Positions 2,004 to 22,500 of a stretch of DNA of 64,000 bases are shown here, piece by piece; within the stretch, counting starts at the first letter, position 1; each line of letters opens with the position of its first letter. The notes under the pieces were generated by a model, which was not told where the DNA came from, did not search any database, and saw only the letters and a program-made list of their open reading frames with translations. The position numbers and the translations under genes are program-made. This DNA is from Lepidodermella squamata (lineage: Eukaryota > Animalia > Gastrotricha): assembly GCA_047495785.1 (NCBI GenBank), contig JBLDXI010000017.1:1736001-1800000 (forward strand), read 5' to 3'.

Positions 2004-3080
2004 TCAAGTTTCAGCATTTTTATTTTCGTACGAGGCTAAGGGATCATAATCGTCGATCGAGGCTTCGTCGAGACTCAAAATAATGTAATTGTCGTTGGCT
2101 GCTAAATTTCCATTCGGACTTGGTAGCAGATTCTTGATAACGAAAGCATCGATAATTTTGTCGAAAGGCACTTCCTGAGTTTGGGTGTACAGCAATTGAA
2201 TGTTCAACGGCTTGCTGATGCGGCCCTCAGCATACGACGGCTTCTGATTCTCCGGGCTTATAGGGGCGAGCTTTTCTATTCTTTTCGGTGGATCAATGAC
2301 AGAAAACGCTCTAAACAACAATAAGGTGATACCCATGGAAACAACTGCCACTGCAAAGCCGTATAAAATATTTGATAGAACTGATTTGATAGTCTGGCAG
2401 CAAGGTTTGCCAGTCGCGCAGCAACCTGCTTGGGCACCCGGAGCAGCCGCGGGATCTGCTGCTGGGGCCAGGTTCGTTTGCGAGCCACTATTCGTCTCCG
2501 GCGCAGCGGCCAGAACACCAGCGGTTTTTTGCAAATCATCAAACGTTGGTATCGTCTGAGGAAGGCCAGTAGGAGATTTAGCCTCGCCAGTAGGTGACGT
2601 AGCCACACTAGTTGGAGACGTAGATACACTTTCCGCGGCCTGTTTCACTTCATCCATAGATATGAAGACGCCGCCGGTTGTTGCGCCCGCCTGCTTCTCA
2701 GGCCCTGGTAGATGTAGCGGAGGAGGTAAAACGGGCGCCGATGGCTCGTAGTCGGGATTAGTCGCAGGTGGTGCCGGCTCCGGCTCAGCCATTTTCCCGC
2801 TGTCCGGGTTAAGCCCAGGGTCATTAGTACGGTCTTTAATAGACGCGTGAAACTTATGTTTCGGGTCCGGTAGATTGGCGACTTTTTGCTTTGCTCCTTT
2901 CGGCAATGGCAGTACATTTATGGCGTTAACGAAACCTTTTTGTATCTTTTCCTTAAAATTATCCGCTTTCGCATGAGTTATATTCAATTTCGATACCGAT
3001 GTGACAGGTAGAAAAGTCTGGCCGAGTAAGGCAAGAGACCACAAAAGACTCCAGAGTTTCAATCGACGGCGATCGCCCAT
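2004..3080 (-). CDS. Type I membrane protein, paralog A (signal peptide, P/T/A-rich ectodomain, TM, conserved cytoplasmic tail)
   Basis: 358-aa intronless ORF; RRRLKLWSLLWSLALLG signal; TM ILYGFAVAVVSMGITLLLF; tail strongly similar to 4470..5366. Confidence 0.85.
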   Translation of the reverse strand: MGDRRRLKLWSLLWSLALLGQTFLPVTSVSKLNITHAKADNFKEKIQKGFVNAINVLPLPKGAKQKVANLPDPKHKFHASIKDRTNDPGLNPDSGKMAEPEPAPPATNPDYEPSAPVLPPPLHLPGPEKQAGATTGGVFISMDEVKQAAESVSTSPTSVATSPTGEAKSPTGLPQTIPTFDDLQKTAGVLAAAPETNSGSQTNLAPAADPAAAPGAQAGCCATGKPCCQTIKSVLSNILYGFAVAVVSMGITLLLFRAFSVIDPPKRIEKLAPISPENQKPSYAEGRISKPLNIQLLYTQTQEVPFDKIIDAFVIKNLLPSPNGNLAANDNYIILSLDEASIDDYDPLASYENKNAET

Positions 3081-4469: not shown

Positions 4470-5366
4470 TTACTTCAAACAAGAACATATGGGGTCGTAA
4501 TCATCAACCACCACGGATTCCTGGCTCAGGCGAATGTACACATCTTTTCTGGCTAAATCCGGGTCAGGACACGGTAGCAAATTCTTGACAACAAAGCTAT
4601 CGACAATTTCGTCGAACCGCACTTCCTTAGTTTTGCCGTAATTCACTTGAATGTTCAACGGCTTGTTGATGCGACCCTCGGCATACGACGGCTTCTGGTT
4701 CTCCGGGCGAACAGGGGCGAGCTTTTCCAGTCTTCTCGCCGGATCAGTGAGGAGGAAAAAATGGCTAAATAGTCCCATGGCTCCAACGAGGACAAACATG
4801 ACGGCAAAACTGACCAAAAAATTGCCCACAACTACCCAAGCTTTCCGGATTTTACTTGCCTCCTCCATGAGCGGCGGAGGCGTGGTTGTATCCACCTTAG
4901 TCTCTTTTGCATGAGCCTGAAGGGCCTTAGCATGAAGCTCCAAAGCTTTTATTGATGGCACCTCATTCGCAGCCTGCATAACCTCGTCAATGTCTATAGT
5001 CGGTGTTTTGCGTTTAGTGAACGCTTTTTTCACTTTAGACGGCAGCGACACAATAAAATTCTTCAGTTTCTTCATTGTTTTTGTTTTTCCACTTTTTCCT
5101 TTCTTCACTTGGTCCACTTTGCTTGCTTCGGTAGCTTCGTTAGCTACGTTAGCTTTGTTTTCATCTTTTTCTTCTTCTTCTTCTATTTTAGTGTCATCTA
5201 TTGTTGGCAATGCGAGTGGTGGTGCAACAGGTGGTGCGGCGGGAGGTGCAGCAGGTGGTGCGATGGGTGGTTCGACGGGTGATGTGACAGGTAGAAAAAA
5301 CTCACCCAGTAAGGCAAGAGACCACAGAAGACTCCAAAGTTTCAAGCGGCGATGCTTCTTGCTCAT
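4470..5366 (-). CDS. Type I membrane protein, paralog B
   Basis: 298-aa ORF; same signal peptide; APP repeats, acidic and basic patches; TM; tail EKLAP..PENQKPSYAEGRI.KPLNIQ shared with paralog A. Confidence 0.85.
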   Translation of the reverse strand: MSKKHRRLKLWSLLWSLALLGEFFLPVTSPVEPPIAPPAAPPAAPPVAPPLALPTIDDTKIEEEEEKDENKANVANEATEASKVDQVKKGKSGKTKTMKKLKNFIVSLPSKVKKAFTKRKTPTIDIDEVMQAANEVPSIKALELHAKALQAHAKETKVDTTTPPPLMEEASKIRKAWVVVGNFLVSFAVMFVLVGAMGLFSHFFLLTDPARRLEKLAPVRPENQKPSYAEGRINKPLNIQVNYGKTKEVRFDEIVDSFVVKNLLPCPDPDLARKDVYIRLSQESVVVDDYDPICSCLK

Positions 5367-5941
5367 TGGCGATGAATTGCAGCGAACGGAAAAATCTCAT
5401 CGTTTTCTCACCATTTTAAGAAGGATTTTTCATTTTTCAATAGGAGCCTATCATCTGGAACAGGCTAAGTAAAATAAAAGACAAAAACAAACTTTGTAAC
5501 TAAGAGCATTTCAAATGACGTTTCGATTAAATGACGGATAAAGAGGAGGATTCTAAACATAAAGCATAAAAATCTTCATTTGTGTCCTGCCAAATAGATA
5601 CAAATTCCAACCAATTTCTTCTTCTTCACAAAATAATTAGCTAAATTTTCGAATTTCACACCTCTCGGAGGCTCCCACTGGAAATTCCTGTGTCCTTGAA
5701 AAATGCATGAAAAGTGTTAGGTTCATGTGATGGAGACACTAGCTTGATTCCACATGGACAAAATCTTGTTTGTCAATTTTTTTTTGTCGATTTTAAACAT
5801 GAAATCGCGAGACGTTAATATTTTGGGAACATGAAGCGGCAGAGAAATAGAGGACTAATGAGGGAGGAAATGGAGAAAAATAGAAAAAGGACAGCGTCTT
5901 CAACGGGTATCATGTATTTTTTCTTTTTTTCTCGTTTTAAA

Positions 5942-6031
5942 GAGCGCAGCTTTCGCTTTAGCGCCCTGAGACCAACATCAGGTGATGGTAAGGATACATA
6001 CCTTAGACACAAATCAAATTCGCAGATGGTT
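5942..6031 (-). ncRNA. Candidate spliced-leader (SL) RNA, copy A
   Basis: AACCATCTGCGAATTTGATTTGTGTCTAAG|GTATGT; hairpins TAAGG/CCTTA, CATC/GATG and GGGCGC..AGC-GAAA-GCT.GCGCTC; 90 nt conserved across 6 copies with divergent flanks. Confidence 0.7.
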
Positions 6032-6630
6032 AAATTTCACCTCGACCAAATTTTCAACCGCCCGCTAAAAGCTTATATCAATTAGCATATCGCATAGTTC
6101 TGAATTCTGTTGGAAATAAAATAGTAGCAATAAAATGGTGCAATGGTGGGGATAACGCATTCTAATATTCAAGACTGCTACTCGAATAAGAGTCAAACTC
6201 CCCCTCGATTCGTACCAATGCAAGAAGAAAGGCGAATTACCCTCAACATCCAAATGGCATTCATCGAGATGAATATTTCCAAAAATGATTCTGTAATTTC
6301 TCAATTACACAGTAGCTTTGGATTGAGAATAACTCAATACTTATTTTGAGAGTAACCAGTCGAGAGGTGTTGAGGAAATCTGTAGACAAAGGAGCGCTTT
6401 TTCTCAGAGTAACCCGGTTGAGGCATGACAAGTCCTCTAGCTGGAACCGGTCCCACTGTACTGTAATTACCGAACTTCAGTTCATTCATTTTGAATAAAG
6501 TAGTTCGGCAACAAAGCTCGAGAAACTGCAACAAAAAAAGAACAGATGACAGACAATCCGGCATGCAACGACCGAAGACGCGACGCAGATAAAATCTCAC
6601 TCTTATCTTATTATTGTTTTGGGTTTTAAA

Positions 6631-6720
6631 GAGCGCAGCTTTCGCTATAGCGCCCTGAGACCAGCATCGGTGATGGTAAGGATACATACCTTAGACACAA
6701 ATCAAATTTCGCAGATGGTT
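6631..6720 (-). ncRNA. Candidate SL RNA, copy B (variant, 31-nt leader)
   Basis: Same RNA with a 1-nt insertion in the leader, a 1-nt deletion in the stem-2 loop and 2 substitutions; upstream motif degenerate. Confidence 0.6.
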
Positions 6721-6910
6721 CATCTAAACTCCGAAAAAATTTAAACTCCAAGCAAAAGCATTCCTACAGCCACGTCAAGTTCCAGGTCATTGTTAAGCCT
6801 GTTCTTAGAATGTAAACTAGGATTATCGACCGATGTAACTAATAAATGCAGTCGACTTCCACATCATTTAAAAAATATCGATTTCACTAATTTCAATAAT
6901 AAATTATCTT

Positions 6911-7050
6911 CGAATGTTCTGTTCAACTTACTTCAATAGCGCCAGCTAACGAATCTGAACTGAGCATGAGACCATTTTCAGGGTCGAATTGAATGCCGCG
7001 AAGACCATGAAATCCACCAATAGCTAATTCAACCATAGCAACGTCGAGCG
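6911..7050 (-). pseudogene. Orphan fragment of N18 exon 2 (3' end plus donor)
   Basis: ELAIGGFHGLRGIQFDPENGLMLSSDSLAGAIE is identical to the end of ORF 14181..14813, without the rest of the exon. Confidence 0.85.
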
Positions 7051-7414
7051 ATGGAGACACTAGCTTGATTCCACCAAAATTTTTAATATCCAACGAGATT
7101 CCTAACCTCAAGTGTGGAAATAAAAGTAGAATTTATTGCGCGAGGAATTTTTAATTGATGCAATAAAAACTCAATTTGTAGGCACTTTTTCACTCGTGAA
7201 CTTTGATGCGAGATGACTACCAACCTCTTTTTGATATCGTTCGACTCCTCGTTAATTCCTCCGAATGTTTAAAAATTCTTTTATTGACAACGAAATTCAT
7301 TCAAGGAAGTATTTTTCCAAATTAATTTATGAAGAGAATAGATTTCGGTAAACTGCAACAGTGAGGTTACAATCACTCGAAAGATTTCGGTCTTCTTTCG
7401 GTAGTTACCACATT

Positions 7415-8732
7415 TCAAGACGAGTCTACATCGACGGGGCTCGCCAAAAATACGACTTGCCGATTTAAGAACTCTGGCAAAGCTATGACGCCGAAGCTAG
7501 TAACACCAGATGCTTCAAATGTGATGAGATCACCGCCTTTAGGAGCCATAGCCACCGCTATTCCATCGGGACGAAAGTTGTCCGGCCCTTGGTAAGCATT
7601 TTCCTTCCGACCATTCGAACTCAACACCTTATCAAAAATAATACGATATAATTAAATAAAATTATAAAACGCAACAAATAATAATAAATCTGAACCGTGA
7701 TTTGATTTTTCAGGGACTTTGTAGCGACCAAGAATTTGCCATCTTCATCTACTGTGCAGCCACTAATGTTACAAAACAATCTGTCGAAGGTTAACAGCTC
7801 ATCCGTGAAAAGTTGGCCATTAGACTGATTAATTGGAATTGTGCCAATTTGACTGCGAATATTACAGCCGAAATACAACCGGCCGTCGGGGTGAACTCCA
7901 TAGACCGTAGCAGAATTAGCCAATTTTGACGGTATCTTTGAAGATCGAACGCTATCCCAGTTCCATAGAGATGTGCCAACAATAGAAGCGTCTTCAATCG
8001 TGAATAATTGGTCGGTTTTAGCGCAACAAGCTATGCCTCGCTGGGCTACTCTGGACGGTAAAGTTCGAATGGTTGAAAATTTGACGGCGCCTTCGCCAGA
8101 TTTCACAGGTTGATCGAGTTGACCGATTTGGCCATTTATAGTGAATAACAAGCGGTTGTTGCACGGGTTAACGGCGACATTGATAGGGGTATCAGCTATA
8201 CGTCTAGGGACATTCAAGATGCCCGAGCAACTACTCCGAGACACTAATTTGCCGTTGTAGGAAAAAAGCTGGAAATCAGATAAATTCGTACCAGTAATAT
8301 TGGAATTCAGAAATTTACACTTATGTTGTAACCATGACTTATTGCAAATTTCCCATCAAATAGCGCCACTGCAGTTGGCTTGAATTTAAAACCGTCACTG
8401 CTCTTGAAAGTAGCCGCAATTTGAAGGTCCGAATAGTCGATTTTACCATCCCCTGGTCTTTTCCGCTTCCTCGTTTTGTCATCGGGTGCAGCCTCAAGGT
8501 TCGCCATTTCTGATGACTTTTTACCCGTCACAACATTTCCAATATCGGCATAGATGAGCCGGGATAGCAGATTGATGAAAATAGGATTGACATTGAATGT
8601 AACCTGAAACTTCGCTTTCGTCAACATGGCGTGAACTTCTTGGAGTCTGCTAATTTCGGATGTTCTCATTTTCATCAGAGACTCAATCACATCGGCAATT
8701 TTATCGTCCAAATCATTCGTAAATGATTCCAT
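7415..8732 (-). CDS. N19: coiled-coil + NHL-like protein (3 exons)
   Basis: ORFs 8307-8732, 7621-8244 and 7415-7627 joined by two phase-0 GT-AG introns; KTRKRKR linker; ISGCTVDEDGKFLVA and FRPDGIAV NHL-like blades. Confidence 0.85.
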
Positions 8733-9057
8733 CGTAAATTAATAGAGCTAAAAATCAATAAGATCCGCAATTAAATTCACTTCAGAAATTCAAAAACAAA
8801 TATGAATCAAGATTGCCGTAACGAGGATAAATTTCAACAAAAACCCTGTTTTTCGATTTACAAATCAATGAGAAGTTCTAAAATTCCGAAAACGTGAGCA
8901 AGGTGATTCCCCCGATTTTCTGGCTAATCTTAGGAAATTTTCTATTTTTACATGATTTTTGAAATTTAAAATACCTATGATATTAGAGAAGCGTCCGACT
9001 ATACCAGGTCAGAATTCACCCTGGATACGGTAATGCAATATTTGTTCGTTGATTTTA

Positions 9058-9216
9058 CGGGTGAGGCGCGAACGCCGGTACCCAAGTGAAATATTTTGCA
9101 CCCGACTCCGCCGATGAGGCAAAGCGCAGGGGTCAGCGCGCCGCAGTGCAATGGCACGCCTCGCCCTGGGGCGACCGACTTGTTGATCTCGGTACATCCC
9201 AGTGCCAGGTAAGTTT
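9058..9216 (-). ncRNA. U1: U1 snRNA, copy 1
   Basis: 5' AAACTTACCTGG; loop I GATCAACAAG; loop II ATTGCAC; GCAC/GTGC closing helix; terminal GCG-TTCG-CGC stem-loop. Confidence 0.95.
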
Positions 9217-9280
9217 AGTGGCAATAGGTTTCAGCTTAAATCCGCTTTCATCACTGATTCGCTTCTGAATATTCGACTTA

Positions 9281-9288
9281 ATTTGCAT
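9281..9288 (-). promoter_or_regulatory. Octamer ATGCAAAT at -72..-65 of U1, in the same position in all four cassettes
   Basis: atttgcat on the + strand inside the tRNA-U1 spacer of every copy; the octamer is a known snRNA enhancer element. Confidence 0.6.
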
Positions 9289-9334
9289 AAAATCAAGTAG
9301 GGAGAATGAAAATTGAATGAAAAAATGCGACGTT

Positions 9335-9406
9335 TAGCAGAGCGTAGTTTCGATCTACAGACCTCTGGGTTATGGGCCCAGCGCGCTTCCACTGCGCCAC
9401 TCTGCT
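9335..9406 (-). tRNA. tRNA-iMet: Initiator tRNA-Met (CAT), cassette 1
   Basis: AGCAGAGTGGCGCAGTGGAAGCGCGCTGGGCCCATAACCCAGAGGTCTGTAGATCGAAACTACGCTCTGCTA: A1-T72 pair, GGG/CCC anticodon stem, ATCGAAA T-loop, T6 terminator downstream. Confidence 0.98.
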
Positions 9407-9558
9407 TGTCTGAGTGCTAAGATCGTAATAGCTAATCAAACTTCAGATTCGTTCGTTTTTGCGAGAAATTCTCTAAATAAATCAGCGGCAATAAACGGCC
9501 GTGAAAAAAATTCAGCTGATTCAGATGTGATAACCACTACACCATAATAAATATAATC

Positions 9559-10140
9559 ATTGACCGAAAATAAGTGAAAAGTGGGGTTTGGCGAATTTTC
9601 TGTATATTCCAGCAAATCGCAAGAAGTGTGTTCACTTGAAGAAAGACGATTCTTGGATTCCAAGATGTTCTTACACAGTTTTTCTTGAGGATTTTAAATT
9701 TTTTAATTTCAGATCCCTAGGATGCTCCCATCCTCCTTAAAACGCGGAAAACCCCAGAGTTGCTCTGAAATGTGTTACTGATTCAGGCCTTTGTAGAGAC
9801 TCTAGCATGATCCCAGTAAAATTTTTGAACATTTACTTAGATTCCTCAGATTGCCCCGGAAAATCTTGACTGCGCACAAGAAAAATGGCATCAGAATATA
9901 TTGCGCGGCTAATTATTAATTGATGCAATAAAAAACTACATTTTTTAAGCTCGCATCATTTTTTAGAATTAGCATTTTTTCGCTCGTAAACTTTGAAGCC
10001 CATTTTCTCAGCAACCCTGATGAATATCAACCCCTTTTTATACCATTCGACTCCTCGTTAATAGACCTTGAAAGTGACACGAAAATCTCACAATGTCAAA
10101 AATTTCGCCAAACCCCACTTTTCACTTATTTTCGGTCAAT
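9559..10140. mobile_element. MITE-like element with a 37-bp perfect inverted repeat
   Basis: ATTGACCGAAAATAAGTGAAAAGTGGGGTTTGGCGAA at 9559-9595 and its reverse complement at 10104-10140; no clear TSD. Confidence 0.55.
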
Positions 10141-10289
10141 TATTTCGTTGGAATTTAAATAATAATTGTTGGAGATTGAAAAATAAAATATTTATTCAAA
10201 GCTACGTTTAATTTTTTTGCGTTTACGTATGATTGCATCGAGGCGCAAGCTTCTCACATATTCATGCGTTTTTCGGCGCCAGTTTAAGA

Positions 10290-10495
10290 CTTTTCAGCAG
10301 AGAACCCAAGGGGTGATACGGCGATCCTGGATAATATCTTGAACGTTCCGGCCTTTCGTTTCAGGAAACTTGAATGTGAATAGGACCAATCAGCAACACT
10401 GATGATCAAAAACGGGAGGAAATGTTTAGCTCCTCTAAGCGGAATGTGGAATTTCCAGTAAACAAAGTATCCGAGTCTCGCGTTTTCCAATTTAA
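10290..10495 (-). pseudogene. Frameshifted fragment of an MFS sugar-porter (GLUT/SLC2A-like) C-terminus
   Basis: HFLPFLIISV in one frame, then LVLFTFKFPETKGRNVQDII in another; PETKG is the sugar-porter post-TM12 motif. Confidence 0.5.
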
Positions 10496-10659
10496 CCTAA
10501 AAACATTATGAGTAAATGGATATTTATTCAAATTTTAGTGATAATCATAATTTTATGAACAATTTCTGAATTAATTTCTCTTCATTCCAGGTCATCAATT
10601 ATATTGAGTTTCAAACGACTGCTGGTAAAAAAACGTCAGGTGGAGGAATTTCTGCTGTA

Positions 10660-13600
10660 TCAGTAACATTGTTTGAGATTAGCGAAAAACGATAGGCGAT
10701 TACTCGCAGCCTCAATGACAGCAACAACGCGGCTGAAAACACCGAAATTCAGGTCGAATGGGTAGTCGTCGGGTATGTCGGCAATGGCCAGGGCCGACGG
10801 AGCAAAATTTTTCATTCCAAAATCGCACAGTCTTTTCTTCGCATCAAGAGAGAATACCTGGAAAATCAACACAAAATTATAATGATTATTCCAGTATTTC
10901 ACGGCTACGCATGCATTGACTATGAAAAAGGTTGTTTCAATTAGCAAAATCAACATTCCAACTTCGAATAATGACTGAAAAATTAACTGTCGTAAAGATA
11001 GATATAGCATAAAATGGCTCCCCACTTGTAAGACGGCACTATCTGAGGAAATCGGTGATCGAATAGCACATTACTACAAGCAACTAGCAAGCCCCTAAAT
11101 GAAAAAGGACGCTTTTCGTAACGGTCCTACGAAGTTTAATATTTTTTATTTTTTTTTTCGTTTTAAAGAGCGCAGCTTTCGCTTTAGCGCCCTGAGACCA
11201 GCATCAGGTGATGGTAAGGATACATACCTTAGACACAAATCAAATTCGCAGATGGTTAAATATTTTCTGGACTTCAAATCCGACCACCCTCTGAAAGACC
11301 AATACACTGAACTCTCCGTGCAGATCAAAGTGGATGGAAAAATGAGAGATCGTTCATTCAAAATTTAAAGACAAGACCACGTCGATAAACATTTGATTTG
11401 ATGAATGATCAAGGTGGCAAAGTCATAAGGTTAGAAATTTGCATCCAAATTTGTTTTTATCCAGTGAGAAAAATTTGCCTTGGAGGCGCGGCGTTATGCA
11501 CTTTGAGGTGCCCACTGGAATTAAGGAAAATGGTGAGCCTTTTGTCCGTGTTCCCTTGGCGATGGTAACACGAAAGGCGAGCGACCGAGGCAGAAAACGC
11601 ATGAAGACTGGAACACCCGAAATATGTGAAACACAGATAATACCCATTTGTGACATGAAACTGCTGTGTTAGAAGCGTGCGGCCTGATGCTATTACCCCG
11701 AGAGCCTTGAAAGGAAACAGAGACGAGAAACGAGCAACATATATTTATCGCAGATAGTATCAAACGAGACGGAAGGCGTAACAGCTACTGCTGAACAAAA
11801 TGGAAAATTTCCAAATTTTTTATTTTTGTTATTTTTTTTTCGTTTTAAAGAGCGCAGCTTTCGCTTTAGCGCCCTGAGACCAACATCAGGTGATGGTAAG
11901 GATACATACCTTAGACACAAATCAAATTCGCAGATGGTTAAATATTTTCTGGACTTCAAATCCGACCACCCTCTGAAAGACCAATACACTGAACTCTCCG
12001 TGCAGATCAAAGTGGATGGAAAAATGAGAGATCGTTCATTCAAAATTTAAAGACAAGACCACGTCGATAAACATTTGATTTGATGAATGATCAAGGTGGC
12101 AAAGTCATAAGGTTAGAAATTTGCATCCAAATTTGTTTTTATCCAGTGAGAAAAATTTGCCTTGGAGGCGCGGCGTTATGCACTTTGAGGTGCCCACTGG
12201 AATTAAGGAAAATGGTGAGCCTTTTGTCCGTGTTCCCTTGGCGATGGTAACACGAAAGGCGAGCGACCGAGGCAGAAAACGCATGAAGACTGGAACACCC
12301 GAAATATGTGAAACACAGATAATACCCATTTGTGACATGAAACTGCTGTGTTAGAAGCGTGCGGCCTGATGCTATTACCCCGAGAGCCTTGAAAGGAAAC
12401 AGAGACGAGAAACGAGCAACATATATTTATCGCAGATAGTATCAAACGAGACGGAAGGCGTAACAGCTACTGCTGAACAAAATGGAAAATTTCCAAATTT
12501 TTTATTTTTGTTATTTTTTTTTCGTTTTAAAGAGCGCAGCTTTCGCTTTAGCGCCCTGAGACCAACATCAGGTGATGGTAAGGATACATACCTTAGACAC
12601 AAATCAAATTCGCAGATGGTTAAAGTTCAATACGACAAAATTTTCAACCGCCCGCTGAAGGCTGATATCAATCAACGTAGCGCATAGTTCTCGACTTCGT
12701 TAGAAATGAATAAAATGGCAATACAATAACACCAAGATCGGTGAGACAAGTCGTTGCTACATGTATTTAACCTGCAAGCGTGTTTTGATGCATGGGGTAA
12801 AACATTGTCATAACCGGGACTTCTCCTTGCTTGAGCTTAGCACCACCTCAATCCATGTCGACGTAAGAAGAGAAATTAGCTAAAACTGATCATCCGAACG
12901 GTGGAATTTATTTATCAGAAAAGCCTCCAGAAAATGAAATTATTTTCAGACTTAGATTTCCCATCAACTCGAAATGACGATTTCGATTTCGTTGAAGACA
13001 ATAGAATTCGTAAACGTTTAAAAGAAAATTGAGCAGGAGACGTGCAACAAAACTTGCGCAATAATTTTTCGAAGTGATTGAGAAGTAACTTTGGTTATTT
13101 TGGAGAAATCGTGGAGTCTCATTATTTCATTTCATTCATTCCGCTGAGGGATGAGCATTGTTTCTGAGGAAAACACGTTATAATGGTCTTTCATTTCTGA
13201 TCTATGAGGAACCATTCTTCGTCCACAATTACCGATGAAGAGTGCCGAATCAAGTCGACTAATCAATTCAAATTAATTAGTTAAGTTAGAATGTTTCCAA
13301 CCACAAAAAGGTCTAGAAAACTCGACAGACTTCGCAATTTAGATAAAGATACGCTAATATAAAGAGGCTTGAAATGGCGATATGTTAATATTTCCGGGTT
13401 CAAAAAGTGGCAGGGTAATAGAGGACGAAGGTAGAACCCCTCAGGATGCTGGGAAACTTTTTAATAGGAAGGCATCGTCACAGGCTAATATTTTGTGTTT
13501 GTTTTTTCGTTTTGAAGAGCGCAGCTTTCGCTTTACCGCCCTGAGACCGGCATCAAGATAAATTAGCCAAAATCATAACCCAAATGGTGGCATTTATTTA

Positions 13601-16141
13601 CCTCAAAAACTGAAATTAGAGGCTTATGAATTTCCCATCAGCTCGAAATGACTCGAATACTGTCTAAAACTAGAACTTGGACGTTATACTAAACATGAAA
13701 TCGCGAGATGTTAATATTTTTGGGTACATGAAGCGGCAGAGAAAATGGAGGAAAAATTTGAAAAAGGACAGTACTTTCAACGGGTATCGTCTATTTTTTC
13801 TTTATTTTCGTTTTAAAGAGCGCAGCTTTCGCTTTAGCGCCCTGAGACCAACATCAGGTGATGGTAAGGATACATACCTTAGACACAAATCAAATTCGCA
13901 GATGGTTAAATGTCACCTCGACCAAATTTTCAACCACCCGCTGAAAGCTTATATCAGTCAACATATCATATAGCTCCGAAATTCGTTGGAAATAAAAGAA
14001 ATTTGCAATAAAATGGCGCAATGGTGGGTATAACGCATTCTAATAATCAGACTGCCACTCGAATAGGAGTCAAACTCCCCCTCGATTCTTACCAATGCAA
14101 GAAAATAAGCGAGTTACTCTTAACATCCGAATGGCATTCATCGAGATGTATATTTCCAAAATGGAGCCCGAATGTTCTGTTCAACTTACTTCAATAGCGC
14201 CAGCTAAAGAATCTGAACTGAGCATTAGACCATTTTCAGGGTCGAATTGAATGCCGCGAAGACCATGAAATCCGCCAATAGCTAATTCAGCCTTGGCGAC
14301 ATCGAGCGAGCCATTCGAAGATATCGGAACGGCGTACAAACTCGATGAATCATCGCTGTTCTCACGAAAGAACAATCTACCGCCATGGGCTCCAATCACC
14401 ATCGGCTCGTTCACTTTCGTAATGACCCACTTATCCTGCGGGGTCCAGTCAGCCAGTGAGTAGGATCGAATGCAGTTGCCAAACGCCGTGAAACAGCGAT
14501 TGACGTTTGCGCATATGGCAAGGCCATGGGCGAACAAACCAGTCGGGTCATCGATAACAGTTCTCACCCTGAAATTTTGAAAGTCCGAGTTTTGTTCGCC
14601 GAGATTGATTGAAATGACGATTCCGCGGGAAACAGCGACCATTTCATTGTTGACTGGGTTCAAAGCGATCAAGCGTGGGCAGGTTTGGTGGCGAGTTGTG
14701 CGCACTTTCGGCCCTTTTTCCGGGACATCGATGATTTTCACCAATTGACCAGTTACGGTATAAATCTGTGATGAAACATAAAATATAAATAGATAAATGA
14801 CCGCCTTAATCATATCAAGGCCAGAGGATTTGTATAAGAAATTTATAAGTTCAATAGTCGTCTATTTGAATCAGACAAGCAGAGTGGCGCAGTGGAAGCG
14901 CGCTGGGCCCATAACCCAGAGGTCTGTAGATCGAAACTACGCTCTGCTAAACGTCGCATTTTTTCATCGCGCTTACGAAAAATTGATATTTATCGCATGA
15001 ACCTGATTTTGATAATTTATCGATTTTTGAAAATCCAGTTCAGTTCCGATTTCGAAATGCTCATTTGAAGCTATGAATGTGATTCTTCAGCTGGGCATCA
15101 ATTTATTCACAGAAAATTGAAAAATTAATACCACCTTAAATATTATGGGAAAAACTTCCTACACAACTTCAAAGGTCCAGTGATGTATTTTCCAGTTTCT
15201 GGACACACTGATATCAAAATTTATCCGAGAACAAAATCGACTACGAGAGACTAAAATCAATAGCGTTTCCGATTTTCAATTTTTTATGTTGAAACTGGGG
15301 TTGATAAACTCGTTTGAGTTATAAGAAAAGATGCAATTTTTTCTCGATTTTACGGGTGAGGCGCGAACGCCGGTACCCAAGTGAAATATTGTGCACCCGA
15401 CTCCGCCGATGAGGCAAAGCGCAGGGGTCAGCGCGCCGCAGTGCAATGGCACGCCTCGCCCTGGGGCGACCGACTTGTTGATCTCGGTACATCCCAGTGC
15501 CAGGTAAGTTTAGTGGCAATAGCTTTTAGCTCATTGCCGCTTTCATCACTGAAACGCTTCTGAATATTCGACTCAATTTGCATAAAATCATGGAGAGAAA
15601 ATGGAACATAGAGTTTAAAAAATGCGACGTTTAGCAGAGCGTAGTTTCGATCTACAGACCTCTGGGTTATGGGCCCAGCGCGCTTCCACTGCGCCACTCT
15701 GCTTGTCTGAGACCATATCACGATAAAGATTTTATGTCCTATTTCTCCAGGTCGAAAATTGTTCAAAAATTTAGGAAAAATCATCTTACTACGTTAATAT
15801 CAAGGTTCGAATCGTGGAAGTTAAGCGTGAAAAATTACCGCGATATAACCGATGAAATGAACAACAAAGCCGTCCTTAGTTGGCAGAGCCGCGACACTGC
15901 ACGGTTTCGACTCTTTCTGGAAGTCTTCCAACGTCAACGAAGCAAGCAGCTTCATTCTTCTGTAAGGATTCTCCAGCCAGATGCGGTACCAATCAGGCCC
16001 CAGTTCAACCTGAGGCGAGCTGGTTTTCTCAGATGGAACGGCTGAATCAAAATTATCCAACAAAGCGCCGAAAGTCTTGACGTTTTTCTCAACTTTTCCA
16101 GGCTTTGCCAGCTCGGTACTTATTTCGATGGTTTGATCCAT
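10660..16141 (-). CDS. N18: NHL-like protein with divergent N-terminus; both introns contain ncRNA genes
   Basis: Exon 1 15839-16141, exon 2 14190-14765 (FHGLRGIQFDPENGLMLSSD), exon 3 10660-10857 (VFSLDAK...FAPSALAI...RLSFFA); phase-0 GT-AG introns at the family positions. Confidence 0.7.
11168..11257 (-). ncRNA. Candidate SL RNA, copy C
   Basis: As copy A with one substitution (GCTGG vs GTTGG). Confidence 0.7.
11850..11939 (-). ncRNA. Candidate SL RNA, copy D
   Basis: Identical to copy A. Confidence 0.7.
12532..12621 (-). ncRNA. Candidate SL RNA, copy E
   Basis: Identical to copy A. Confidence 0.7.
13517..13555 (-). pseudogene. 5'-truncated copy of the candidate SL RNA (3' hairpin only)
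   Basis: gagcgcagctttcgctttaccgccctgagaccggcatca, then similarity ends; leader and donor missing. Confidence 0.7.
13818..13907 (-). ncRNA. Candidate SL RNA, copy F
   Basis: Identical to copy A. Confidence 0.7.
14878..14949 (+). tRNA. tRNA-iMet: Initiator tRNA-Met (CAT), solo inverted copy
   Basis: Identical 72-nt sequence followed by a T6 run; no U1 downstream on this strand. Confidence 0.98.
15353..15511 (-). ncRNA. U1: U1 snRNA, copy 2
   Basis: As copy 1 with one substitution just before the Sm-site position. Confidence 0.95.
15632..15703 (-). tRNA. tRNA-iMet: Initiator tRNA-Met (CAT), cassette 2
   Basis: Identical 72-nt sequence. Confidence 0.98.
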
Positions 16142-18431: not shown

Positions 18432-18839
18432 AATCGATAGCGAAAATATTGAAAAAATTAACAGCAGAAGGTATCCTAAAAAATATATGTTCCATTATGC
18501 ACAATGCTAATGATCTTGTCGCTTTTACGAATTATGCTGTTACCTAAGAGATTTCGATACCGCAGTCAAAATCAGTAAACGGAATTTGAATCAACACTGT
18601 GAAAATGGGGCTCATAAGTAAAGGAGCTGCTCACAAGAAGGGGGTCGATATCAAAAAATTTAAAACTTAGGTAGGTTATTATCCATCCAAATTTAGCAAA
18701 AATCCACTTGGCAAAGGTCCATTTTTCTGTTGATTTTACCTGCTTTTAGAACGTTTAAAATACCTATGAATTCAGAGAAGCGTCCGAGTATACCAGGTCC
18801 GAATTCACCCTGGTTACAATATTTTTTGTGTTAATTTTA

Positions 18840-18998
18840 CGGGTGAGGCGCGAACGCCGGTACCCAAGTGAAATATTTTGCACCCGACTCCGCCGATGAG
18901 GCAAAGCGCAGGGGTCAGCGAGCCGAAGTGCAATGGCACGCCTCGCCCTGGGGCGACCGACTTGCTGATCTCGGTACATTCCAGTGCCAGGTAAGTTT
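18840..18998 (-). ncRNA. U1: U1 snRNA, copy 3 (variant)
   Basis: U1 hallmarks retained; four substitutions relative to copy 1 in stem/loop I and stem/loop II. Confidence 0.9.
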
Positions 18999-19116
18999 AG
19001 TGGCAATAGATTTCAGCCAATTACCGCTTTCATCGCCAAAACCCTTCTGAGTATTCGACTCAATTTGCATAAAATCAAGTAGGGAGAATGAAAATTGAAT
19101 GAAAAAATGTGACGAT

Positions 19117-19188
19117 TAGCAGAGCGTAGTTTCGATCTACAGACCTCTGGGTTATGGGCCCAGCGCGCTTCCACTGCGCCACTCTGCT
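19117..19188 (-). tRNA. tRNA-iMet: Initiator tRNA-Met (CAT), cassette 3
   Basis: Identical 72-nt sequence. Confidence 0.98.
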
Positions 19189-19508: not shown

Positions 19509-22500
19509 TTAGCGACCGCCGAACAAATGAACACCAGAATCTTTGCTAACAACGGCCACGATATTACGATAGGTGGAGTCGCCCACCTTGTAGGGTGACC
19601 CGTTATAACAATGAAGCACCGCGCAGTTTTTCGGCACAAACGAATTGACCGGTACTCTAGGAGGGCATTCCAACGTAGCAAGTCTTGTTCTCCCATCAGC
19701 ACTGAATATCTAAAATATTTTGGAAAACTGCAAGAAATATTATTTCAATCAGAATTACCTTGACGTTATTCGATCCGCTGTCAGCAGCAATCAAGTGTCC
19801 AAATTTGTCAACGACCGATCCATCTAGGTAGACGAATTCGCCACGCATTTCAATTTTCATTTGTTTGAAGTCCAAATTTCCGTTATACAAAATCGGCACC
19901 GAGACTAGCGAGTCGGCAAATTTTGAGCGAATAAGAAGTTTTTTCCTGAAACAGCCAACCACATACGGCTTATTCAAAGAAGGAACAGTCCATTCGCCGC
20001 ATTGCTTCCAGTTGAGCAATGAGTAGGATTTAATTATACCTCCAAAGGCTGCGAATAACACCTTCCGTTCGCGACAGACGCCAAATCCGCATGGCGAAAG
20101 ACCGCTCTTATCTTCGATCACCTTAAATACTCGTGCAATATCGTCATTCGGACCGAATTTTCCGAATTTGAAGATTTTTTGATCATCGGCTAGGTAGAAT
20201 TGTTTTGATATGTAGTCATAGACGAGTGAACTCGAGGCGTATTCGCCGAGGGCTGCCTTGCCAGAAACACCCGGGAGACTGAGCGTTCGGCCTAATTTCC
20301 CCGATGAGGAAATCATCTAAAATAAATTGAAGTATCATTAAGGCATGATTTCAGTATTTAATTTCGAAAAATTCGGAAAAATTTAGCCATATTTTTAAAT
20401 TTAACTCCACGGGGGTACAATTTTATCAGATTTTTCACCTGTCGTCTGATTCAATCGCATTGGATGAATGCCAGGCTGCCGTTCAAACTCCCGAAGAATA
20501 GGCTGACTAGGCAAAGCGGGCGAAAATCCATGCAGTTACATCTTATGGAAGTGGGAACTGTTGTTGTTCACCGCTCGCAGAAATTCCTTTCCAAGGATGA
20601 CACTCACTATTTACTACTCTTCACTACTCTTCACTACTCTTCCCTCACCTATTTCAGTTTGGCAGCGGCGGATTGCCCGAAAGCGGGCATACTCTTACTC
20701 GAAGCGGGAGCAAGTCATTCACTGGCTCAAAGTGTCAAGCAATCGAAGCTGCTTGAGGCAATGGTTGATGAATTCCCTCGAAGATCGCCATCTACTGCCA
20801 GACAATCAGTATGCTTTTCGTTCTCACCTCTCTGCTACCGACGTTCACCGCGTGTTCCACAATCGTTCTCATCGCCGATCTTGACGTGGAAGTCGCCTAT
20901 GACTCCATCTGGCCTGCTGGTCACAAGCTAGCCCAGCTGCCTCTACCGCGGAACCTCCTTGGTTTGACTATCACTATGCCAGCTTTGATCAATCGATCAA
21001 CATGGATACAACTGACTACATTAGTATTAGATCTATATTGTATATATTAGATAACACGTTTCGAACTACTGAGCTCCCTCCATGACATGGAAATCACGGC
21101 TTTGAATAGGCAAAGGAGCAGCTCCGTTATCGAGCTCCACAAACCCGCGCCCCAGGAAAAAGAGAAGAACCCAGGTGATCGCAAGGGTGATCAAAGTTTT
21201 CTTATGAACATCGTATAATGGTTCAAAAATTTCGCACCTTAAGAAAAATCGACCCGTCCCGCCTCCTTGAGAAAATGTTGAGGTTTTAGAAAAGCTCTGA
21301 ATGCTGCTATGCGCGCAACTCCTGATTCTGATGTGAAGCGTTCAACAACTCCTCTTCAACCTGCTGTAGAGGATGGTAGATTTGTCAGAGCTACTTTGCC
21401 CTACTTTAAAACGAATTTGCCTCAACTGAAAAATCCTAATCCGAAGCGTTAACGAAGTTACGGGCAAGAAAAGCTACTACCATTTGATTGCAAATTATTT
21501 TGAAGCGCTCCCAAAAAATTTGCAAAACGGAGAGTTTTATCGTGTTGCTTTGGCAAAATTCGGAATTAGAAAAATTTGCCAAAACCAACCTGGAAACGGT
21601 CCATTATTGTGTTGATTTTACGGGTGAGGCGCGAACGCCGGTACCCAAGTGAAATATTTTGCACCCGACTCCGCCGATGAGGCAAAGCGCAGGGGTCAGC
21701 GCGCCGCAGTGCAATGGCACGCCTCGCCCTGGGGCGACCGACTTGTTGATCTCGGTACATCCCAGTGCCAGGTAAGTTTAGTGGCAATAGCTTTCAGCTC
21801 AAATCCGCTTTCAACAGTGAAACGATTCTGAATATTCGACTTAATTTGCATAAAATCATGTAGGCAGAATGAAAATTGAATGAAAAAATGCGACGTTTAG
21901 CAGAGCGTAGTTTCGATCTACAGACCTCTGGGTTATGGGCCCAGCGCGCTTCCACTGCGCCACTCTGCTTGTCGCACCCAAAGAATTTGCGACGAGTTTT
22001 ATCATGGTGCTTTGGCAAAAGTTAACAAATTCGGGGTCATTTTTTCAAATCAGGTAGTGGGAATCCATTGCTATTAAATCCGCCAAATAGTTTCTTCAAT
22101 TTTGAAATAATCGAAAATAAAATTTAATTCACCGATATTTGATTTTTCGAGTGGCGTACAACGAAGCAATTCCAGCCTGCCACTGCAACGATACTTCTTG
22201 CCTGAGGAACATTCAGCGAGCCCAGAAAATCAATTCGCTGAAATGAATCATCACCGCTATATCTCGTCGGGGCATGTTTCACCGCCGGACCACGTTTCAA
22301 AATGTTCGAGGTTAATTTTTTGAGACGACTAGGCGATTGAATTCTCACAGGATCAGGAATTCGCGTCTCATCTTGTGTCGGACTTCGAGCTGTTACTTCG
22401 AATTTGCCAACCGCTGATGCCTTGAAAGCGGCGAACGCTTGCATAAATTCGGGCGTGCGAACGTAGGACACTTGCAAACTGCCACCGGAATTGAGTTTGG

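Follow-up and report, generated by a model that had tools for sequence, protein, structure and literature searches.

A multicopy gene family of the gastrotrich Lepidodermella squamata that very probably encodes a spliced-leader RNA

In this work we describe a family of short repeated genes in the genome of the gastrotrich Lepidodermella squamata that very probably encode a spliced-leader (SL) RNA. The genes are clustered in a stretch of 64,000 nucleotides (nt), referred to below as the window (positions 1736001-1800000 of contig C17, in an assembly of 121.2 megabases and 151 contigs), and each carries a leader of about 30 nt, AACCATCTGCGAATTTGATTTGTGTCTAAG in its 30-nt form, directly followed by the splice donor GTATGT. 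Cut exactly at this donor, the leader is found on the messenger RNA (mRNA) of RPS3A, a gene on another contig, as well as on RPS3A transcripts of related species and on genomic sequences that are best read as retro-copied transcripts. SL trans-splicing is distributed patchily across animals, a pattern that may reflect many origins or many losses; the little-studied gastrotrichs are placed beside the flatworms, a phylum that does trans-splice.

Leader, donor and hairpin of the repeated genes

The window holds six full copies of the gene, all on the minus strand (Table 1), of which five share 99-100% identity and the copy beginning at 6720 is about 96% identical; three of them (11257, 11939 and 12621) follow one another at an exact period of 682 nt. 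A whole-genome pattern scan with the exon/intron junction word TTGTGTCTAAGGTATGTA returned 47 matches, against none in the reversed control, and at least 47 gene copies, clustered and single, are spread over more than 15 contigs. SL genes also lie inside or adjoin large protein genes, often on the same strand, and Pfam searches of the cluster flanks identified these as DNA polymerase alpha (L017), an annexin-repeat gene (L026), dynein heavy chains (L022, L023 and L027) and an SNF-family transporter (L019).

Alignment of 33 distinct copies defines a conserved region that begins at AACC, with a near-invariant TT just 5' at -2/-1, and ends past a GAAA-loop hairpin at about nt 91. The mini-exon is 30-31 nt long, free of ATG and ends in ...TTTGTGTCTAAG, and GTATGTA follows it in 33 of 33 copies. 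Nucleotides 1-37 (AACCATCTGCGAATT..ATTTGTGTCTAAG^GTATGTA, the caret marking the splice junction here and below) are invariant except for a mid-exon patch of 2-4 nt (TTTG, TTTA, TTAT, TTAA and others). The linker after the donor is hypervariable (25-33 nt) and leads into the 3' hairpin, AGGGCGC-UAAA-GC-GAAA-GC-U-GCGCUCU, in which 99% of cells are paired and compensatory changes occur in five of the seven outer pairs; none of 500 shuffles was as good, and slid controls collapsed. Its loop is mostly of the GNRA type (GAAA, GUAA or GCAA), and the UU just 3' of it is nearly invariant. All 38 genome matches to the hairpin motif fall at SL genes or at a single SL-like element of the window (13510-13640), and apart from this singleton the genome contains no second SL family with the hairpin.

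The preliminary description of the window, made from its sequence, had reported six near-identical copies, a sharp onset of conservation at AACC with an end after the GAAA hairpin, and an ATG-free leader of 30 nt ending in AAG ahead of GTATGT, all of which are recovered here. The three stems that it drew fare unequally. The 3' hairpin is upheld by covariation; the TAAGG/CCTTA hairpin around the donor is present in the window copies and lost in most divergent ones; and the middle stem, stem-loop II within the linker, folds no better than shuffled sequence (mean z -0.36). Because the linker differs freely without folding better than shuffles, we regard the TAAGG/CCTTA and middle stems as features of the window copies only.

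One SL gene elsewhere on contig C17 (L044/L001) has a 186-nt insert exactly between the exon AAG and the GTATGT donor, the insert itself ending in GAG just before GTATGT; it could be a captured exon or the result of gene conversion from complementary DNA (cDNA).

The leader on messenger RNAs, in relatives and in retro-copies

Because no highly expressed 5' end lies within 6 kilobases (kb) of the SL clusters, RPS3A was used for the mRNA test. The gene was located by Pfam (PF01015) on contig C46 (locus L067, C46:1753177-1756812), where the whole-genome pattern scan found no copy of the leader/donor junction. Public sequencing runs were examined as assembled contigs (Logan). In run X22, which dates from 2014, comprises 21 million letters and covers exons only, with introns spliced out, a contig ends at L067 place 2207 with a loose end, AGACACAAATTAAATTCGCAGATG, that is the reverse complement of CATCTGCGAATTTAATTTGTGTCT. 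On the gene strand this leader end runs into genomic AAG TAGGGTTTAAGGTATTGAAA ATG, and the genome upstream has ttctggttcttc instead; the mRNA reads leader...CTAAG^TAGGGTTTAAGGTATTGAAAATG and the genome upstream of the acceptor ttctggttcttcAAG. In total, 27 of the 30 leader bases are joined to RPS3A at an AG acceptor 20 nt 5' of the ATG, and the variant of the mid-exon patch that they carry agrees with genomic copies. The three missing bases would be accounted for by the 31-mer assembly of Logan, which cannot extend through a 30-nt sequence common to many mRNAs.

The same or a homologous leader stands on RPS3A transcripts of at least four related species. Near-identical words were found in freshwater poly(A) metatranscriptomes when public runs were searched with RPS3A, and the RPS3A proteins closest in sequence come from metatranscriptome or Logan entries (81-92% identity), the top named matches being molluscs and annelids at no more than 66%; RPS3A and RPL15 of L. 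squamata both have spiralian affinity. In L073, with 92% amino-acid identity, the RPS3A transcript reads ATTTAATTTGTGTCTAAG^GGTTTT...ATG. In L096 the end of a SMART oligo, ACATGGGG, is directly followed by the whole leader, AACCATCTGCGAACTTTGATTTGTGTCTAAG^, and because the leader abuts this cap-switch oligo, the RNA 5' end is placed at AACC. A homologous leader, ...CTCTGCGATTTCGTGTTCTGACTAAG^, occurs on two different 5' untranslated regions (UTRs) in L084 and L085, from one species, and in L088 and L089, from another; the gene of L084 and L085 is seen in unspliced form in L083. A third homologue, ...CATCCTTTGCGAAATTCGTGTTTGACTAAG^, is carried by L074-L081. The relatives' leaders resemble that of L. 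squamata more closely than shuffled sequences do (0 of 2000 and 2 of 2000 shuffles as good). The preliminary description had proposed that the repeated RNA is an SL RNA, and the leader does stand at mRNA 5' ends, attached through an AG acceptor to transcripts of genes located elsewhere, both in the L. squamata run and in several relatives.

In a marine relative (L094 and L095), the acceptor that receives the main leader also bears a second one, ATCACTTGCTGAATTTGTGTTAATTTGAG^, which ends in AATTTGAG. In L072 and L070 the acceptor is preceded by 7-8 nt (GTTTGAG and ATTTACAG, respectively) that may represent either a second leader or acceptor sequence left unspliced. For RPL15, the only transcript from a relative (L090) has 15 nt of 5' UTR and is too short at its 5' end to inform on the leader.

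Further evidence comes from the genome itself, in which pattern scans recovered the leader without its intron as eight different sequences at nine loci, fused to unrelated sequence exactly at ...CTAAG^ (Table 1). Each breakpoint falls at the predicted donor; the leader is either complete or has lost 1-11 nt from its 5' end, and the upstream flanks are free of SL promoter boxes. An ATG-led open reading frame (ORF) of at least 280 amino acids begins 12-68 nt past the junction in five of the eight; in L031 and L032 the first ORF lies only some 310-330 nt downstream. CCHC zinc knuckles, typical of retroelement gag/ORF1 proteins, occur in three of these ORFs (two by Pfam, one by eye), and the carriers are mostly retroelement gag-like ORFs. 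These loci are best read as retro-copies of trans-spliced RNAs, and the ORF1/gag elements that carry the leader appear to have been trans-spliced before retrotransposition. The leader targets examined are accordingly one cellular gene, RPS3A, and eight different retro-copied transcripts.

Several further observations concern the RPS3A locus and its runs. Other contigs stop just before the ATG with unrelated tails, at L067 place 2184 in X22 (GGGGGAGTGCTCCAAAAAACAAC) and at place 2187 in X2 (34 nt, AT-rich), which may reflect alternative 5' ends or material of other organisms in the runs. A further run, X1, was judged to be SMART cDNA by its adapter loose ends. Introns at L067 measure 56-68 nt. 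A selenophosphate-synthetase-like gene lies 5' of RPS3A, and 3' of RPS3A, in the same orientation, follows a TRAPPC2-like gene whose ATG is 187 nt past the RPS3A stop, a spacing that resembles an operon.

Transcription units and competing explanations

When 40 distinct SL gene flanks were aligned on the first base of the gene, they were found to have in common GGGCGG at -32..-27, an A-rich patch at -23..-20 and TT at -19/-18 and -2/-1, and many also carry ATGCGAT near -60; the remaining upstream flank is unrelated from cluster to cluster. Small nuclear RNA (snRNA) genes of the same genome are similarly organized, with GCGG at -29..-26 in U1 genes, GGCGCC near -28 in a U2 gene adjoining an SL copy, and ATGCAAAT near -75 in both U1 and U2 genes. 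Such position-fixed upstream boxes point to independent transcription units of the snRNA type and argue against retroposed copies. The SL genes lack a T-run terminator.

These features suggest a mechanism in which each gene would be transcribed as its own small unit from an snRNA-type external promoter, marked by a GC box near -30 and by TT immediately ahead of the start, to give an RNA of some 91-97 nt whose first bases are AACC. The mini-exon would consist of the initial 30 nt (in some variants 31) and end in AAG, and the invariant GUAUGUA(U/C)C right after it would serve as 5' splice site. Trans-splicing by the spliceosome would then attach the mini-exon to AG acceptors that lie a few bases 5' of the start codon in pre-mRNAs from other genomic loci, and the rest of the molecule, an unconstrained linker and the terminal GNRA hairpin, would be discarded.

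Several points weigh against the identification as SL RNA. The direct RNA evidence for L. squamata is one assembled contig from one run for one gene, the run itself being taken as a transcriptome from its size and exon-only coverage, as its library type is not on record; the SL RNA itself, with its size, ends and cap, is a predicted molecule. In the RNAalifold model, ACC (nt 2-4) is predicted to pair with G^GU across the donor as stem-loop I, all of them bases that never vary. The fold of the whole molecule as a single sequence is not unusually stable (z -1.15), and an Sm-binding motif, whether AU4-6G or a relaxed form, occurs in none of the 33 distinct copies. Rfam likewise gave no family for the element at gathering thresholds, RF00198 and RF00199 included, and only noise at E <=10. 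The absence of a canonical Sm site had been pointed out in the preliminary description, which also listed an Rfam search among its checks.

The lack of an Sm site and of an Rfam match, together with the unremarkable fold, would equally suit some other snRNA-like non-coding RNA, with a regulatory or processing role for example, that is no splice donor and whose matches on mRNAs are artefacts. We consider this highly improbable, as an exact match of 24 nt adjoining an AG acceptor is no chance event and the same junction recurs independently in a Logan contig, in Joint Genome Institute (JGI) metatranscriptomes that span several samples and species, and among the genomic retro-copies. Cis-splicing offers another route by which the leader could reach mRNAs, as a conventional first exon within a repeated promoter-exon cassette, and some copies do share the strand of the polymerase alpha, annexin and dynein genes and lie within them or upstream. 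However, RPS3A carries the leader although the whole-genome pattern scan found no leader/donor junction on its contig, relatives place the same leader on different UTRs, and a structured 3' hairpin, unique to these genes by its 38 matches, is kept some 35 nt past the donor, so that little credence is left for this explanation.

The preliminary description had also named a retroposed small RNA as an alternative on account of the A-rich 3' flank. The flank is indeed A-rich, and dozens of copies over many contigs, several of them within introns of large genes, would also fit a short interspersed nuclear element (SINE) that ends in an A-rich tail and does not at present act as splice donor. Nevertheless, the unrelated flanks, uniform decay and dispersed single insertions of such an element are not what the family displays. 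The flanks of divergent copies hold promoter-like boxes at fixed distances, which is unexpected for retroposed copies; divergence sits in the hypervariable linker and leaves the exon and donor (the 5' 37 nt) unchanged, which speaks for selection on each copy rather than neutral decay; genes are arranged in tandem with a 682-nt period; and mRNAs carry the leader alone, cut exactly at the donor. A SINE is thus exceedingly improbable, and we retain the identification of the repeated genes as SL RNA genes.

The missing Sm site may also be taken at face value. The U2 snRNA of this genome (L060:947-1142) has the canonical Sm site AUUUUUGG. The singleton at 13510-13640, which has only the 3' hairpin in common with the family and a unique 5' half ...GTTTTTGAG^GTAAAT (also written ...CAGTTTTTGAG^GTAAAT), contains the canonical Sm-like GAUUUUGG and is either an SL RNA gene of a second class or a broken copy. 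It may be a second class rather than a wreck, since in the marine relative the acceptor of the main leader also takes a second leader with AATTTGAG at its end. A tentative and rather doubtful proposal is that the gastrotrich SL RNA is truly Sm-less, with no canonical Sm core, that proteins bind it at the invariant GUAUGUAUC and at the GNRA hairpin and conserved UU tail, that its route of transcription or maturation may differ from that of other SL RNAs, and that the singleton (UUUGAG leader, GAUUUUGG) represents a second SL class.

In the window, the SL genes are interleaved with U1 snRNA genes paired with initiator methionine tRNA (tRNA-iMet) genes (Table 1). At the position expected for its Sm site U1 has AAUAUUUCAC, in contrast to the canonical site of U2. 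Genes for snRNAs are abundant genome-wide: at least 47 U2 and at least 48 U5 matches exceed the threshold, and many of them are arrayed in tandem, one unit about every 2.4 kb. On contig C24 a U2 gene lies some 370 nt from an SL gene. The window consists mostly of diverged NHL/TRIM-like and G-protein-coupled receptor genes. Pfam searches of 26 window ORFs and a homology search with ORF 2004-3080 yielded no usable expressed neighbour gene, and an exact-protein look-up of ORF 4470-5366 returned no record. Outside the assembly, the public metagenome contig L069 (JACCDR010895355.1) carries a near-identical SL gene flanked by a 5S ribosomal RNA (rRNA) gene and a 28S 3' end. A second metagenome contig, L068 (OGCL01009087.1), has tandem mini-repeats of leader and GTATGT, with U-rich Sm-like motifs after them, in a ribosomal DNA spacer that adjoins 5S and lies upstream of 18S; alignment of its 18S rRNA to the L. 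squamata genome gave partial pieces of low identity and, as high-copy words are skipped by the search, is no measure of relatedness.

Table 1. Coordinates of SL genes, associated features and leader-fused loci. Positions without a contig are those of the window.
Feature	Position	Strand	Remarks
SL RNA gene copy 1	5941..6031	-	A1 of AACC at 6031; exon 6002-6031; GT donor 6000-6001; variable linker ~5968-5992; 3' GNRA hairpin 5941-5967
GGGCGG box	6058..6063	-	-32..-27 of copy 1; same distance in 40 distinct SL gene flanks
SL RNA gene copy 2	6630..6720	-	A1 at 6720; ~96% identical; 31-nt leader (extra A); linker with 1-nt deletion
U1 snRNA gene	9057..9216	-	one of four U1 in window, each after a tRNA-iMet gene and interleaved with SL genes
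tRNA-iMet/U1 snRNA cassettes (four)	9057-9406, 15352-15703, 18839-19188, 21620-21969	-	interleaved with SL genes
SL RNA gene copy 3	11167..11257	-	A1 at 11257; unit 1 of 3 at 682-nt spacing
SL RNA gene copy 4	11849..11939	-	A1 at 11939; 682-nt series
SL RNA gene copy 5	12531..12621	-	A1 at 12621; 682-nt series
Singleton chimeric SL-like copy	13510..13640	-	family 3' hairpin 13515-13541; donor GT 13600-13601; Sm-like 13567-13574
SL RNA gene copy 6	13817..13907	-	A1 at 13907; full copy
Fifth tRNA-iMet	14878-14949	+	among window SL genes
SL gene with 186-nt insert (L044/L001)	C17:1138492-1138775; C17:1138742	-	
Leader-fused locus L029	C4:652784		
Leader-fused locus L030	C7:4113099		
Leader-fused locus L031			
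Leader-fused locus L032			
Leader-fused locus L036	C56:313923		
Leader-fused locus L038	C10:218376		
Leader-fused locus L059	C19:3601622		
Leader-fused loci L063/L064	C54:552118 and 564236		duplicate pair

Significance and comparison with known systems

SL trans-splicing in Gastrotricha appears to be undocumented so far. The leader sequence, in DNA or RNA spelling, occurs in no paper of the searchable literature, and no paper there (subscription literature lying outside the search) links gastrotrichs to SL trans-splicing, the sole match being an unrelated review of Euglenozoa; the L. squamata genome paper mentions neither trans-splicing nor spliced leaders nor operons (PMC11660948). A gastrotrich SL RNA family, whose leader has homologues in several relatives from fresh water, soil and the sea, would add a phylum to the trans-splicing animals and would let one ask whether trans-splicing is ancestral to gastrotrichs and flatworms. 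Its apparent lack of an Sm site, beside the canonical site in U2 of the same genome, would be unusual among SL RNAs. In practical terms, the leader sequence allows true 5' ends and operons to be annotated in the only gastrotrich genome, and is a potential universal 5' primer for full-length cDNA in these animals.

The L. squamata genes share with those of the nematode SL1 and SL2 RNAs (RF00198 and RF00199) an exon followed by a GU donor, multiple copies, and an snRNA-type organization with an upstream proximal element; linkage to further small RNA genes, 5S for example, is also frequent among nematode SL genes and is seen for the SL gene on L069. Unlike the L. squamata element, which has no Rfam match at E <=10, the nematode RNAs have a 22-nt leader and a canonical Sm site between stem-loops II and III. 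The leader-fused loci, for their part, recall the relict spliced leaders in dinoflagellate genes that Slamovits and Keeling reportedly described in 2008 as a recycling of processed cDNAs. In both cases genomic fusions of leader and transcript suggest that trans-spliced RNAs were reverse-transcribed and integrated. In L. squamata, however, most carriers are retroelement gag-like ORFs, and they bear one leader rather than a stack.

As in Hydra, Ciona and rotifers, the family is specific to its lineage, comprises several sequence variants and has no similarity to the SL RNAs of other phyla, although the SL RNAs of those animals keep recognisable Sm-like sites, e.g. AAUUUUGA/CG in Hydra (PMC7986045). 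Comparison with the flatworms, the proposed sister phylum of gastrotrichs (PMC6468455), reveals both differences and likenesses. Schistosoma mansoni has a 36-nt SL, a 90-nt SL RNA and more than 100 clustered genes (PMC7986045); its leader, as given in the same paper, is no more similar to that of L. squamata than expected by chance (768 of 2000 shuffles as good). In the flatworm, the last leader bases are AUG and the SL RNA contains a long Sm site, AGUUUUCUUUGG; in L. squamata, the last leader bases are AAG and the RNA lacks an Sm site. In general architecture, the L. squamata family is nonetheless like the platyhelminth SL RNAs, with an RNA of about 90 nt, a long leader (30-36 nt), clustered multicopy genes and a leader that begins with AACC.

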